DNA from: Octopus sinensis
Lineage: Eukaryota
DNA: 64,000 nt
Direction: 5' to 3'
Assembly (NCBI RefSeq): GCF_006345805.1
Contig: NC_043026.1
Coordinates: 12,751,579 to 12,815,578, forward strand
The notes beneath the pieces are model-generated. The model saw only the letters and a list, made by a program, of their open reading frames with translations. It was not told where the DNA came from and ran no database searches. Below, one piece after another: positions 25,119-47,265 of this stretch. A program made the position numbers and the translations under genes. Numbering within the stretch: position 1 is the first letter of the stretch; the number at the start of each line of letters is the position of its first letter.

Positions 25119-26066
25119 TCACACTTTTACATGGACAGATGCATGTGTAGTTAAGTTACTTCTCTGAGAGAAAGATTTTCCACAGATATCACAATTATAT
25201 GGCATCTCACCTGTATGAATATGTTTGTGTTTAGTTAAATTTGAGTTGTCAGAGAATGATTTGCCACAGATATCACAGTGATGTGGTTTTTCTCTCGTAT
25301 GAATACGTTTGTGAGTAGTTAAGCTGTTGCTCTGAGAGAATGATTTATCACAGATGTCACAGTGATATGGTTTCTCCCCTGTATGAACACGTCTGTGCTT
25401 AATTAAGTTCTGTTTTGCAGTGAATGATTTACCACAGGTGTCACACTGATATGGTCTTTCCCCTGTGTGAATATATTTGTGAGTAGTTAACACACTATTT
25501 TGAAAGAATGATGTACCACAGATATTGCAGCGATATGGCTTCTTTCCTGTGTGAATACGTTTGTGTGTTGTTAAGGCATTACCTTCAGAGAATGACTTAC
25601 CACAGGTAACACATTGAAATGGCTTTTCTCCTGTATGAAAACGTTTGTGTCCGTGTAAGTGACCATACAAAGTGAATGCCTTACCACAGATATCACAGGG
25701 ATATGGTTTCTCTCCTGTGTGAATATATTTGTGTTTAGTTAACGTACTACTTGCAGAGAATGATTTACCACAGACATCACAGTGAAATGGTTTCTCCCCT
25801 GTATGGATACGCTTGTGATATGTTAAATGACAATTATGAGAGAATGATTTACCACAGGTATCACAGTCAAATGGCCGCTCCCCGGTATGAATACGTTTAT
25901 GTCCAGTTAAGTGATGTCTTAGAGAGAATGATTTACCACAGGTATCACAGTCAAATGGCTTCTCACCTGTATGAACACGAATGTGTTTAATCAAATCATT
26001 ACCTGTGTGGAAGAATTTACCACAGATTTCACACCAATGTTGTGATTCTCTCAGTTCTTTTGACAT
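25119..26066 (-). CDS. ZNF4: C2H2 zinc-finger protein, 11 fingers, 315 aa
   Basis: Intact ORF; acceptor at 26470-26472; donors at 28897 and 29903. Confidence 0.93.
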   Translation of the reverse strand: MSKELRESQHWCEICGKFFHTGNDLIKHIRVHTGEKPFDCDTCGKSFSLRHHLTGHKRIHTGERPFDCDTCGKSFSHNCHLTYHKRIHTGEKPFHCDVCGKSFSASSTLTKHKYIHTGEKPYPCDICGKAFTLYGHLHGHKRFHTGEKPFQCVTCGKSFSEGNALTTHKRIHTGKKPYRCNICGTSFFQNSVLTTHKYIHTGERPYQCDTCGKSFTAKQNLIKHRRVHTGEKPYHCDICDKSFSQSNSLTTHKRIHTREKPHHCDICGKSFSDNSNLTKHKHIHTGEMPYNCDICGKSFSQRSNLTTHASVHVKV

Positions 26067-26667
26067 TTCTCTAAAGGATACAAATCAACCCAACCATTGA
26101 AGTTTCTCACAGTATCAAATTTTTCCTTTACCGTTCTTCTCTGACCAAATCATATAATTTCCTTTTTCTTGTTCTTTTGTAATAATTTATTCCTCAGAAA
26201 TATTTCTACTGCTATCAACAGTGATCATTATCAATATCTAAAGATGCTGTTTAATTAGAATGCAAAAGCACCGGGTAATGAGATGGAGAAATGTTGCTAT
26301 GAATCTCAGGTGAGAGCCAATATTTCACAGCAATCCAACCCTAGATTTATAGCAGTAGGGTTATTATATCTGTTCCCTAAGACATTTTCCTTTAGTCTTT
26401 AAGACATGATAGATATTCCAGATGTATCCAATATACAGAAGTCGTTTTGTGCCTATGTCATCTGTGAATCTGAAATAATAAAGAAACAGTTTTAGATAGA
26501 GAGGAGAGATCAAAATGGAAATGTTACAACATTTCTTTATAAATTAACAAATGGCATCATATAACATTGGGTGAAATCTAAAAATCTGTAGACTACAACT
26601 ACTCCATCACACTGTGTGTGTGTATATATATATATATATATATATATTTATATATATATATATTCAC

Positions 26668-26949
26668 ACAAGAAAAAAGCAGCAAGAATGGATTAGTTGT
26701 TCAGTACAATTGTTTCATACAAAGAACAGATTTATTAAAAGCTGCAAATACAAGTGTCCCGTATTCATCAGCCAAAACACATATGAGTTTACCAAACCCC
26801 CTAGGATGTTTGGAAAACTCATATGTGTTTTGGCTGATGAATACAGGACACTTGTATTTGCTGCAATATTTGCAGCTTTAAATAAATCTGTTCTTCGTAT
26901 GAAACAATTGTACTGAACAACTGATCCATTCTTGTTGCTTTTTTCTTGT
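26668..26949. mobile_element. Near-perfect inverted repeat (~130-bp arms), probable Penelope-like element LTR pair with hammerhead-like motifs
   Basis: 26668-26797 is the reverse complement of 26806-26949; each arm has CTGATGA-ATAC...GTAT-GAAA-CAATTG-TA; absent from the mirror arm. Confidence 0.6.
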
Positions 26950-27223
26950 TTATAATCACCCCACATTATTTTATGGTTAATACCATAAAGATTTCTGGTG
27001 CATATAAGTTAAGTACCACATTCATGTGAATTCATTGGAACTCACTTGAATCTTAATTATTTTACTGAAAAGAATATATACATATATATATATAATATAT
27101 TAAATTAGAGACAAAACCACTATTAGGCAAATCATATAATATATTACTATAAAATTGGATTTAATCCTAAATCTGATTTTTCCCTGTAAGTTTGGATTTA
27201 TTCCCTAATATTTATTATTATTA

Positions 27224-44400: not shown

Positions 44401-45030
44401 CATACCTATCTATCGATTGATCATACGTGCCGGACTTCTTGTCTGGCTTCCAGAAATCCGGGAATATGCCGACTTGAAAAATACACCCTTCCCCCACCCC
44501 ACATATATAAAAAAAAAAGAAGAAATTTTTACGGTGAGCAACGATCTTCTTCTTCAAATGTAAACAAAAGACCGTTCACCAGTTTGACTGCAACGGTACC
44601 CATACCGTAATTTAGCCTCTTAGGCAATTATTGATCATAATATTCCATGCTTCCTGAGATTCACCAACACTACACCTGATCTTTCTCCCCTCCATACACA
44701 CACAAACACGTATCTGACTCATACACTGTTCGCTTCCCAGGCATTTCTACATTACTCCATATGCTTTATTACACACTTTCTGACAGGTTGTGGGGCACCT
44801 GAGCCCTGGATACAATAATTTCGTTATTATTATTATTATTATTATGAAATAAGGGTTTCAAATTTTGCCAGAAGGGAGCGATTTGGGGAGAAGGGGACGA
44901 GACGATTATATCGAGCGCAGAGTTTTCATAGTACCTATTTCCTCCTCCCCTTTTGGAGCGGAGGGAATAAGTACCCCTTAAGGAGTTGGTTCTGGGGACG
45001 GGGGGGGGGGATATCCGCAGGTCGAAAGAG

Positions 45031-45143
45031 GGGGCGGATTACTTTTATCACATGACACCCCACACTTCCGTTTCCGCTACATCCTGCCTGACGCGGGAGA
45101 AGAACCGTAAAGTGTTTTTGTTTGTTTTTCACGAGATTTTGAG
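45031..45143 (+). promoter_or_regulatory. ZNF8 proximal promoter / exon 1
   Basis: GGGGCGGA, ATCACATGAC (45047-45056), ACTTCCGTTTCCGC (45064-45077), GAGATTTTGAG|GTGAGT donor at 45144. Confidence 0.72.
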
Positions 45144-46401
45144 GTGAGTAAACATATTTTCACTCTAAATATTGATTTGTGTAGCATAACAAGTAAGATA
45201 TCCACACCTATCTATCGATCGATCGATCGTAGGTGCCGGATCTCTTATCCGGCTTCCAGAAATCCGGGAATACTTATACCGTGTATAAGATGACCAGGTT
45301 TTCATCTTTACACTTTGTGGGTCCTGAGGGACGACTGTGGCCTTCCTTGCTGCCTCCCCCTTCTCTGGTCATATCTAATTCGGATTGTTTTCCTCCTCCA
45401 GAGCACACAACACTACGCTTCAGTGAGCGATGTTGAGCAGAATCTTCCAAAGTTAGACTAAGTTTCACCAAAGAACAGACGGAATTACACCCTCAACACA
45501 ACACGGCCTAATTTCCTATTTTACAAACGTAAAATCGATTCACAGTCGAAATTGCATCAATGAATTGCACGAGTATTCTTGTCGCAGTGGACCTTATGAG
45601 AAATGGCACTTTGCCAGTTCTTCGCAGTCGCAGCATATCTCCAGAGGTCTCGGTTTTTTTGTCATTGCCTCTGTGAGGCATAATGTTCAAAGGCCATGCT
45701 TCACTACCTCATCCCATGTCTTCCTGGGGCTACCTCAACCCCGGATTCATTCAACTGTTTGGGAGTGGTACTTTATTTACACAGCTCTCCTCATCCAATG
45801 TATGTGCGTATATATATATATATATATATATATATATATATATATACACACACACAAGTGTGATGGAGTAGTTGTAGTCTACAAATTTTTAGATTTCACC
45901 CAATGATGTCAATATAGAAATGTTATAACATTTCTCTTTTGATCTCTCCTCTCTATCTAAATACTGTTTCTTTATTATTTCAGATTAACGGATGACATTG
46001 GCATAAAACGACTTTTGTTCATAGGAGACATTTGGAATATTTACCATATTTTAAAGACTAAAGGAAAACGTTTTAGGGAACAAATATAATAACCCTACTG
46101 CTATAAATCTGGGATTGAATTACTGTGAAATATTGGCTCTCACCTGAGATTCATACCAACATTTCTCCATCTCCTTACCTGGTGCTTTTGCTTTCTAATT
46201 AAATTTGAATATATTTTTAAAGGGGTTTGCAGCATCTTTAGATATTTATAATGATCACAGTTGATAGCAGTAGAAATATTTCTAAGGAGTAAATTATTAC
46301 AAAAGAACAAGAAAAAGGAAATTATATGATTTGGTCAGAGAAGAAAAATTTAATATTGTGAGAAACTTCAATGGTTGGGTTGATTTGTATCCTTTAGAGA
46401 A

Positions 46402-47265
46402 ATGTCAAAAGAACTGAGAAAATCAAAACATTGGTGTGAAATCTGTGGTAAATCATTCTTTAGAAGTACTGAGTTGATTAAACACATTCGTGTTCATACA
46501 GGTGAGAAGCCATTTGACTGTGATACCTGTGGTAAATCATTCTCTCTAAGACATCACTTAACTGAACATAAACGTATTCATACTGGGGAGCGGCCACATC
46601 ACTGTGATGTCTGTGGTAAATCATTCTCTGCAAGTAGTACGTTAACTAAACACAAACGTATTCACACAGGAGAGAAACCATATCCCTGTGATATCTGTGG
46701 TAAGGCATTCACTGAGAATGGTCACTTACACAGACACAAACGTTTTCATACAGGAGAAAAGCCATTTCAATGTGTCACCTGTGGTAAGTCATTCTCTGAA
46801 GGTAATGCCTTAACAACACACAAACGTATTCACACAGGAGAGAAGCCATATCGCTGCAATATCTGTGGTACATCATTTTCTGAATGCGGAGTCTTAGTAA
46901 GACACAGACGTATTCACACGGGAGAGAGACCGTATCACTGTGTTATCTGTGGTAAATCATTCTCTGGAATTAATGACTTGACTAGACACAAACGTATTCA
47001 CACAGGGGAGAGACCATATCAGTGTGACACCTGTGGTAAATCATTCACTGCAAAACAGAACTTAATTAAGCACAGACGTGTTCATACAGGGGAGAAACCA
47101 TATCACTGTGACATCTGTGATAAATCATTCTCTCAGAGCAACAGCTTAACTACTCACAAACGTATTCATACGAGAGAAAAACCACATCACTGTGATATCT
47201 GTGGTAAATCTTTCTCTCAGAGAAGTAACTTAACTACACATGCATCTGTCCATGCGAAAGTGTGA
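46402..47265 (+). CDS. ZNF8: C2H2 zinc-finger protein, 10 fingers, 287 aa (arm paralog of ZNF4)
   Basis: Intact ORF; acceptor ends at 45983. Confidence 0.93.
   Translation: MSKELRKSKHWCEICGKSFFRSTELIKHIRVHTGEKPFDCDTCGKSFSLRHHLTEHKRIHTGERPHHCDVCGKSFSASSTLTKHKRIHTGEKPYPCDICGKAFTENGHLHRHKRFHTGEKPFQCVTCGKSFSEGNALTTHKRIHTGEKPYRCNICGTSFSECGVLVRHRRIHTGERPYHCVICGKSFSGINDLTRHKRIHTGERPYQCDTCGKSFTAKQNLIKHRRVHTGEKPYHCDICDKSFSQSNSLTTHKRIHTREKPHHCDICGKSFSQRSNLTTHASVHAKV

Follow-up and report, generated by a model that had tools for sequence, protein, structure and literature searches.

Recombination among finger repeats as the probable main source of divergence between ZNF4 and ZNF8, two palindrome-borne zinc-finger genes of Octopus sinensis

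Results

A palindrome within a cluster of effector-less zinc-finger genes

The window analysed here is a stretch of 64,000 nucleotides from Octopus sinensis chromosome CM016888.1 (GCA_006345805.1, start about 12,751,579), in which open reading frame (ORF) and finger parsing identified ten effector-less Krüppel-type C2H2 poly-zinc-finger ORFs, designated ZNF1 to ZNF10 (Table 1). Self-BLAST anti-diagonals delineated a palindrome with an arm of ~17 kb, across which three gene pairs are mirrored (ZNF3/ZNF9, ZNF4/ZNF8 and ZNF5/ZNF7), and the substitution-only divergence between its non-coding arm segments (1.6-2.8%) was taken as the neutral arm baseline. We focused on ZNF4 and ZNF8, which an earlier note, made from the sequence of the window alone, had described as arm paralogs that differ mainly at DNA-contacting helix residues while their flanks stay near-identical, and had interpreted as a rapidly retargeted DNA-recognition system. 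As detailed below, we consider it probable that the differences between the two genes arose mainly from recombination among finger repeats and cluster paralogs, within a palindromic duplication that predates the split between O. sinensis and O. vulgaris.

ZNF4 and ZNF8 encode finger arrays without effector domains

A pattern search resolved both proteins into tandem CX2CX12HX3H units of 28 residues, 11 in ZNF4 and 10 in ZNF8 with three unit indels between them, joined by TGEKP, TGERP, TGKKP, TREKP and TGEMP linkers. Pfam scanning of both proteins returned C2H2-type families only (zf-C2H2 with 178-179 bits, gathering cut-off 25.2; zf-H2C2_2 with 269-276 bits, gathering cut-off 40) and no KRAB (PF01352), SCAN, BTB/POZ, ZAD or SET domain. 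The stretch ahead of the first Cys, which the earlier note had put at about 10 residues, measured 11 in both proteins (MSKELRESQHW in ZNF4), and the same start methionine (MSKEL) is used in the O. sinensis and O. vulgaris gene models and in the RefSeq model of the ZNF2 allele. In the 3 kb upstream of each gene we found no long ORF conserved in the sense direction, and seven ORF fragments (38-149 aa) from this region gave no significant Pfam match, the lone match (E=0.2) lying under the cut-off. The arrays are thus effector-less as the note had proposed, with KRAB, SCAN, BTB and ZAD absent from the ORFs and from 3 kb upstream, and its ORF positions and helix strings were likewise reproduced exactly, including the restriction of HNCHLTY and DNSNLTK to ZNF4 and of GINDLTR to ZNF8. 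As tandem repeats the 84-nt finger units match at only 72-74%, and fingers within one gene are about 70-75% identical. From these arrays we infer that ZNF4 and ZNF8 are sequence-specific DNA binders, now with different predicted targets of ~30 bp.

Mosaic tracts link ZNF4 and ZNF8 to other members of the cluster

Outside a short stretch at finger 1, ZNF4 and ZNF8 are mutual closest relatives. Within this stretch, the ZNF4 codons ACA GGT AAT GAT, encoding TGND, together with a third-position C, are common with ZNF3/ZNF9, and the ZNF8 codons AGA AGT A.T GA., encoding RS(S/T)E, represent the state of ZNF2/ZNF10. Across a 677-nt region (560 nt upstream plus nt 1-117 of the coding sequence, CDS), six sites exhibited the incompatible split ZNF4=ZNF3=ZNF9 / ZNF8=ZNF2=ZNF10, and all six fell at CDS nt 19-64 (permutation P=0.0009). 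A looser split test (ZNF4=ZNF3=ZNF9≠ZNF8, only sites at which ZNF4 and ZNF8 differ) gave P=0.12, and in a Sawyer-type longest-run test the ZNF4/ZNF3 tract at finger 1 fell short of significance (P=0.06), its run being broken by two substitutions private to ZNF4.

A second mosaic was observed in finger 7 of ZNF4 (QNSVLTT), whose initial 23 nt are the same as those of ZNF8 finger 6 (ECGVLVR) and are followed by 22 differences, with a synonymous divergence (pS) of 0.69 compared to 0.03-0.04 in the rest of the gene, while its tail differs only once from that of ZNF8 finger 7 (GINDLTR). These head and tail matches therefore suggest that ZNF4 finger 7 arose by fusion of fingers 6 and 7 around a middle part that is foreign or strongly altered. 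ZNF2, ZNF10, ZNF3 and ZNF9 each have a GI(S/T/N)DL finger at this place in the array. GINDLTR, taken in the earlier note as gained in ZNF8, is indeed present only there, but in view of these counterparts was more likely lost from ZNF4. At the other end of the gene, ZNF4 fingers 10-11 differ from ZNF2 fingers 7-8 at 4/159 nt, compared to 50/336 in the other positional-homolog fingers (Fisher p=9e-6), and the DNSNLTK finger may have been either lost from ZNF8 or brought into ZNF4 from ZNF2. The helix cassette of ZNF8 finger 2, LRHHLTE, has a near-match in an unrelated ZNF located 1.5 Mb away, with one difference in 41 nt, and the remainder of the finger differs at 17/43. This finger (positions 10810-10893 of our locus L004 on CM016888.1, about 1.5 Mb upstream of the window) carries the cassette SLRHHLTE, whose nucleotides are all the same in ZNF8 finger 2, compared to about 40% difference over the rest of the finger. 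Finally, ZNF4 and ZNF10 share a run of 20 concordant polymorphic sites in a non-coding tract upstream of ZNF4 (-355..-269, P=0.0008), and exchange is therefore not confined to or aimed at helices.

Contact-position enrichment and its dependence on the exchange tracts

To compare the two genes we used a finger-by-finger codon alignment (259 codons, 780 aligned nt), which replaced a plain global MAFFT alignment in which the 84-nt repeats were mis-registered and divergence was inflated to about 15%. Two tracts held 31 of the 49 nucleotide differences (nine in finger 1, unit nt 19-38, and 22 in ZNF4 finger 7 versus ZNF8 finger 6), and fingers 8 and 9 of ZNF4 and ZNF8 showed none. Amino-acid differences numbered 26, affecting 9/36 contact codons (-1, 2, 3, 6) and 17/223 others (Fisher p=0.004), and for the whole helix (-1..6) 13/63 codons were changed compared to 13/196 outside (p=0.002). 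The enrichment reported in the earlier note is thus real, but the statement that the differences lie "mainly" at contacts is too strong, as contact positions account for 35% of them and the helix for 50%.

Such enrichment would be expected if conflict with transposable elements (TEs) had driven positive selection on the contacts and retargeted the copies by point substitution, with KRAB-free repression of TEs via a cofactor or steric blocking. Consistent with this scenario, contact codons carried seven non-synonymous and no synonymous differences when finger 7/6 was left out, and, genome-wide, TE consensi show enrichment for the motifs predicted for octopus ZNFs (Wells 2023, PMC10547256). In older paralog pairs (ZNF2/10, ZNF4/2 and ZNF8/2), non-synonymous divergence (pN) at contacts was about equal to pS (ω 0.65-1.26, compared to 0.2-0.3 at other sites), a family-wide pattern already known for poly-ZF genes. 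Moreover, ZNF4/ZNF8 stands out as a true outlier among the arm pairs of the palindrome in the way it has evolved: the ZNF3/ZNF9 control exhibited a pS of 0.094, a pN of 0.014, an ω of 0.15 and 1/40 contact codons changed, and the ZNF5/ZNF7 control an ω of 0.19 and 0/28.

Nevertheless, the contact pN/pS of 1.38 over all codons was driven by the exchange tracts, and two of the four changed helices lie within mosaic, exchanged segments, which argues against the point-mutational retargeting that the earlier note had envisaged. With the two coding tracts removed, pS was 0.029 and pN 0.026 (overall ω≈0.9), and contact codons were changed in 3/29 cases compared to 8/195 other codons (p=0.16), so that the excess at -1/2/3/6, on which the reading in that note was made to depend, loses significance when the exchange tracts are left out. 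The contact codons then held four non-synonymous and no synonymous differences where about two non-synonymous are expected at pS=0.029, which is not significant and represents no excess. The residue after the tracts consists of the finger-5 helix, E->G at +6 of finger 2, two R->Y changes at +9, a linker E->K and a C-terminal V/A difference, and is compatible with selection, relaxation or an unseen donor alike. In the finger-5 helix, the changes from ENGHLHR to LYGHLHG (positions -1, +1 and +6) are derived in ZNF4 and comprise four non-synonymous differences in 19 nt with no donor among 137 fingers, as positive selection might produce. Several of the ZNF4-derived changes, however, either replace residues able to make contacts (R->G, and E->G at +6) or strike the framework, which looks more like relaxation than retargeting, and no helix has changed since the species split (see below). 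Taken together, we regard retargeting by TE-driven positive selection as unlikely.

The helix differences predate the O. sinensis/O. vulgaris split

The orthologous O. vulgaris loci (L005 and L007; GCA_951406725.2, OX597841.1) were found through ZNF6 and ZNF3, whose proteins are identical in that species. Exact-protein look-ups with ZNF5 and ZNF9 gave no match, nor did exact cluster look-ups, homology searches with full ZNF4 or a 198-aa C-terminal query yielded no ortholog among at least 8000 generic poly-ZNF candidates, and an 88-aa N-terminal ZNF4 query returned only proteins of ≤154 aa and no ortholog. O. vulgaris possesses a 315-aa ZNF4 and a 287-aa ZNF8 with finger sets, gene order and orientation as in O. 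sinensis, and 21/21 helices are identical between the species, a comparison of low power given a divergence of only about 1%. The species differ at 2/948 nt in ZNF4 and at 8/864 nt in ZNF8 (6 non-synonymous, 2 synonymous), none of them in a helix. In the 677-nt 5' region, the O. vulgaris ZNF4 and ZNF8 each match their own ortholog at 51/52 of the sites at which ZNF4 and ZNF8 differ; the coding-site differences in CDS nt 1-117 are all shared by both species, and the per-finger ZNF4/ZNF8 difference counts are nearly the same in O. vulgaris. The diversification is therefore older than the species split (between-species divergence about 0.6-1.7%, arm divergence about 2%). All helix changes predate that split and none has occurred in either gene since, which does not support the rapid or ongoing change proposed in the earlier note.

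These data also bear on relaxed constraint after duplication, under which one copy, chiefly ZNF4, would have been redundant and drifting, with the helix as the least constrained part of the finger. The overall ω of ≈0.9-1.0 compared to 0.15-0.19 in the neighbouring arm pairs, the ZNF4-derived framework changes (finger-1 S->F, R->Y at +9 twice, TGEKP->TGKKP) and the about neutral rate of ZNF8 since speciation are all consistent with relaxation, as is a Cys->Arg replacement at a zinc ligand of the last finger in both O. vulgaris copies. On the other hand, both reading frames remain open in the two species and in a second haplotype of O. sinensis, and the two between-species differences in the ZNF4 CDS are fewer than the about 6.6 expected from the flank rate (Poisson estimate P≈0.04). 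Drift also provides no explanation for nine differences within 20 nt that match another paralog, nor for a pS of 0.69 in one finger, and relaxed constraint as the main cause therefore appears rather improbable to us.

The Cys->Arg replacement is the same TGT->CGT change at the second zinc ligand in both O. vulgaris copies (L007 18280-19227; L005 18379-19242), accompanied by an adjacent synonymous state that is also common to both, which therefore indicates arm-to-arm conversion; it further suggests that the last finger is dispensable. In O. vulgaris, the equivalent of window positions 26654-28042 occurs twice (L007 19817-21197; L005 1-1390), about 7 kb apart, and roughly 7 kb of extra DNA (duplication or insertion) therefore lies between ZNF4 and ZNF5 in that species.

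An unplaced 283-kb O. sinensis scaffold, VCDQ01005994.1 (L003/L008, 131.8-158.7 kb), is collinear with window positions ~0.7-29 kb at 98-99.7% identity and is probably an uncollapsed haplotig. Its ZNF4 allele exhibited three nucleotide differences, including A130G and G139R (+6 of finger 5, at a CpG), so that this position is G in the main assembly and R in the haplotig. The haplotig also carries a 318-bp deletion within the reverse transcriptase (RT) fragment. An apparent finger-number polymorphism of ZNF2 (RefSeq model P0124) proved to be a gene-model artefact, the haplotig ORF being intact and identical. Since the left part of the window recurs in this scaffold at 99.3%, the assembly does contain redundant haplotigs, and the two paralogs might in principle be allelic copies or haplotigs that were misjoined into an inverted repeat. 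We consider such an artefact highly implausible, as both genes, with matching order, orientation and finger sets, are found in the independent O. vulgaris chromosome assembly, the haplotig gene is a ZNF4-type allele and not ZNF8-type, and the arms differ by large indels and by satellite copy number (21 versus 6).

Flank divergence between ZNF4 and ZNF8 differs between the two sides of the genes

Alignment of nine paralogs revealed a conserved upstream block of ~560 bp, which we assign to all ten genes (for the truncated ZNF7, see below). It begins right after a (TA)n(CA)n microsatellite, and its last bases, CCTTTAG, lie five nt ahead of the start codon. The block holds a candidate exon with a GTGAG donor and a polypyrimidine-AG acceptor at its end, suggesting that it may comprise a 5' untranslated exon and a short intron, and the microsatellite may mark the edge of the duplication unit. 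A hidden N-terminal domain within the block was ruled out by stops in all frames, non-triplet indels among paralogs and the lack of a Pfam match.

Between ZNF4 and ZNF8 this 5' block differs by 41 substitutions/560 nt, or about 7-8%, compared to the neutral arm baseline of 1.6-2.8%, and the near-identity ascribed to the flanks in the earlier note thus holds for the 3' flank (about 1.4%) but not for the 5' block. In the 3' flank, substitution divergence was 1.4% between the O. sinensis ZNF4 and ZNF8, 3.5% between the ZNF8 of the two species and 4.3% between the O. vulgaris ZNF4 and ZNF8. The ZNF8 3' flank of O. sinensis is therefore closer to that of ZNF4 than to its own ortholog, which indicates that the O. 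sinensis flanks were homogenised after speciation, and their identity reflects arm-to-arm conversion in this species and not slow divergence. The contrast between diverged helices and identical flanks was thus in part created by conversion of the flanks.

Other features of the window

ZNF7 (39825-40431) is a 5'-truncated copy that retains the seven C-terminal fingers of ZNF5 at 97.7% identity, lacks a start codon and the upstream block and sets the inner boundary of the right palindrome arm, and ZNF3 (16797-17565) contains a four-finger (336-nt) internal tandem duplication relative to ZNF9 (51935-52822; 14 versus 10 fingers). The units of the 167-bp satellite are 99% identical and encode many overlapping ORFs of 103-128 aa without a Pfam match, which arise because the period is not a multiple of three and are probably not real genes. 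RVT_1 C-terminal fragments and related ORFs were observed at 27242-28114, 17929-18240, 51139-51576 and 6833-7345, together with many tRNA-like SINE copies with short coding stretches. The RT fragment adjoining ZNF4 has no counterpart at the mirrored position of the right arm so that either one arm gained it by insertion or the other lost it by deletion. On its outer sides the palindrome is flanked by a 237-bp tandem repeat with 95-97% unit identity, at 13999-14474, 56012-56724 and 62272-62749. An Rfam search of the window gave no match.

Table 1. Coordinates of the genes, palindrome arms, flanks and exchange tracts within the window
Feature	Position	Strand	Description
ZNF1	2476-3672	+	poly-C2H2 ORF
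ZNF2	10763-11485	-	poly-C2H2 ORF
ZNF3	16347-17570	+	poly-C2H2 ORF
ZNF4 coding exon	25119-26066	-	315 aa, 11-aa N-terminus and 11 C2H2 fingers
ZNF5	32267-33409	-	poly-C2H2 ORF
ZNF6	36789-37913	+	poly-C2H2 ORF
ZNF7, truncated copy	about 39853-40431	+	poly-C2H2 ORF
ZNF8 coding exon	46402-47265	+	287 aa, 11-aa N-terminus and 10 C2H2 fingers
ZNF9	51935-52822	-	poly-C2H2 ORF
ZNF10	57014-57808	-	poly-C2H2 ORF
Left palindrome arm	15896..32873		ZNF3, 167-bp satellite, ZNF4, RT fragment, 3' part of ZNF5 (self-BLAST anti-diagonal)
Right palindrome arm	39825..53292		truncated ZNF7, ZNF8, satellite, ZNF9 (self-BLAST anti-diagonal)
167-bp satellite, left arm	20818..24326		21 copies, 3' of ZNF4
167-bp satellite, right arm	48029..49037		6 copies, 3' of ZNF8
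Conserved upstream block of ZNF4	26067..26626	-	~560 bp, from alignment of nine paralogs
Conserved upstream block of ZNF8	45842..46401	+	same block as that of ZNF4
ZNF4 3' flank	24330..25118	-	homogenised with ZNF8 3' flank in O. sinensis
ZNF8 3' flank	47266..48028	+	homogenised with ZNF4 3' flank in O. sinensis
ZNF4 N-terminus/finger-1 helix mosaic tract (...ESQH...TGNDL)	25995..26048	-	CDS nt 19-72, matches ZNF3/ZNF9
ZNF8 counterpart of this tract (...KSKH...RSTEL)	46420..46473	+	matches ZNF2/ZNF10
ZNF4 finger 3 (HNCHLTY)	25782..25865	-	84-nt unit missing from ZNF8 in both species
ZNF4 finger-5 helix (LYGHLHG)	25650..25670	-	four non-synonymous changes from ENxHLxR kept in ZNF8, ZNF2 and ZNF10
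ZNF4 finger 7 (QNSVLTT), hybrid	25446..25529	-	head as ZNF8 finger 6, tail as ZNF8 finger 7, middle matches neither
ZNF8 fingers 6-7 (ECGVLVR, GINDLTR)	46855..47022	+	correspond to the single ZNF4 finger 7
ZNF4 fingers 10-11 (DNSNLTK, QRSNLTT)	25119..25277	-	97.5% identical to ZNF2 fingers 7-8
ZNF2 fingers 7-8	10763..10921	-	partner of the ZNF4 3' tract
Non-coding tract upstream of ZNF4	26335..26421	-	-355..-269, matches ZNF10

Discussion

Our analysis favours, with reasonable though not full confidence, recombination among finger repeats and cluster paralogs as the main source of the ZNF4/ZNF8 differences. ZNF4 and ZNF8 would be members of a lineage-specific octopus expansion of effector-less Krüppel-type poly-C2H2 genes, copied within an inverted segmental duplication older than the O. 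sinensis/O. vulgaris split. Whole fingers would have been gained and lost when the 84-bp repeats recombined, as in the finger-6/finger-7 fusion in ZNF4, and short ectopic gene-conversion tracts would carry helix-coding "cassettes" between paralogs, the conserved framework and linkers supplying the homology; candidates are the finger-1 helix, also found in ZNF3/9, fingers 10-11, with their partner in ZNF2, and LRHHLTE, which recurs in the ZNF 1.5 Mb away. A few point substitutions may have been added, mostly in the ZNF4 lineage (finger 5 E->L, N->Y and R->G; finger 2 E->G), and arm-to-arm conversion would keep parts of the flanks nearly identical. Since strong variation within a finger is confined to the helix codons, any exchange of fingers looks like divergence of contact residues.

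Several observations weigh against recombination as the main source. The four changes in finger 5, all non-synonymous at -1, +1 and +6, fit positive selection and an unseen donor equally, and the strong purifying selection on ZNF3/9 (ω=0.15, 1/40) and ZNF5/7 (ω=0.19, 0/28) is unlike the pattern of ZNF4/ZNF8. The helices ECGVLVR, QNSVLTT, LYGHLHG and HNCHLTY had no donor among the 137 sampled fingers, and for this reason the finger 7/6 exchange is inferred from its high synonymous divergence. With O. vulgaris as the oldest outgroup compared, either partner of each conversion may have been the donor, and selection may have favoured the retention of exchanged cassettes. A bolder extension of the recombination scenario, in which short-tract conversion of helix cassettes would be a systematic and selectively favoured reshuffling of DNA-binding modules across the ~1,800 effector-less octopus ZNF genes, is speculative and in our view improbable; if true, it would provide a combinatorial, recombination-based repertoire for new repeats, nearer to PRDM9 or antigen-variation cassettes than to stepwise KZNF evolution.

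The expansion of C2H2 ZNF genes in octopus was reportedly described by Albertin and colleagues in 2015, and the present locus resembles it in organism group, clustering, adjacent satellite or tandem repeats and absence of KRAB. Targeting of TEs by octopus ZNFs has already been proposed: genome-wide work predicts it and places contact residues among the most variable (PMC12513265, PMC10547256), Wells et al. 2023 (PMC10547256), with octopus included, reported a ZNF-TE link independent of accessory domains, and Holzinger et al. 2025 (PMC12513265) treated a TE arms race in cephalopods as an open question, while neither study dissects a single paralog pair or reports helix-cassette conversion. Across animals, Emerson & Thomas 2009 (PMC2604467) found that recent poly-ZF paralogs diverge at -1/3/6 whereas orthologs conserve the helix, that finger number varies, and that GENECONV detects short conversion tracts. 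The poly-C2H2 expansions described there, including non-KRAB ones, thus share with ZNF4/ZNF8 the clustering, the divergence of paralogs in helix and finger number, the stable ortholog helices and the short conversion tracts; what differs here is that most of the difference traces to identifiable exchange tracts and not to point substitutions, and that the pair sits in a palindrome with arm-to-arm conversion. Compared to the FiNZ-ZNF genes of cyprinid fish (Wells 2023), the 11-aa N-terminus is too short for the conserved FiNZ sequence.

Vertebrate KRAB-ZNFs are similar in their tandem Krüppel-type fingers, TGEKP linkers, clustering, birth-and-death evolution and contact-residue divergence, whereas ZNF4 and ZNF8, with an N-terminus of only 11 residues and no KRAB domain, consequently have no known TRIM28/SETDB1 route. 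The PRDM9 zinc-finger minisatellite likewise acquires new DNA specificities when its 84-bp finger repeats undergo unequal exchange and conversion, but ZNF4 and ZNF8 have no KRAB/SSXRD/PR-SET part, their within-gene fingers are about 70-75% identical compared to >90% in PRDM9 arrays, and allelic hypervariability was not seen, the haplotig ZNF4 allele being three nucleotides different. The ampliconic palindromes of primate sex chromosomes consist of inverted arms around a unique spacer, with patches kept near-identical via intrachromosomal conversion. The octopus arms differ in being only about 17 kb long and about 2% diverged, with patchy conversion that also involves non-arm paralogs.

The exchange, loss and copying of finger pieces between neighbouring copies is the ordinary evolution of such families, and the addition made here is modest: genes of the cluster pass helix cassettes and entire fingers to one another, and the palindrome adds arm-to-arm conversion. 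For genome scans, a pattern of differing contact residues and identical flanks need not mean positive selection, since conversion or unequal exchange mimics retargeting where variation within each repeat is limited to the helix, and flanks under concerted evolution give a false neutral baseline. The locus offers a clean, datable example, with two species, two haplotypes and three arm pairs, and ZNF4/ZNF8 is a convenient pair for asking whether effector-less octopus ZNFs bind TEs. Collectively, octopus ZNF clusters appear to diversify via finger indels and cassette exchange atop palindromic duplication.

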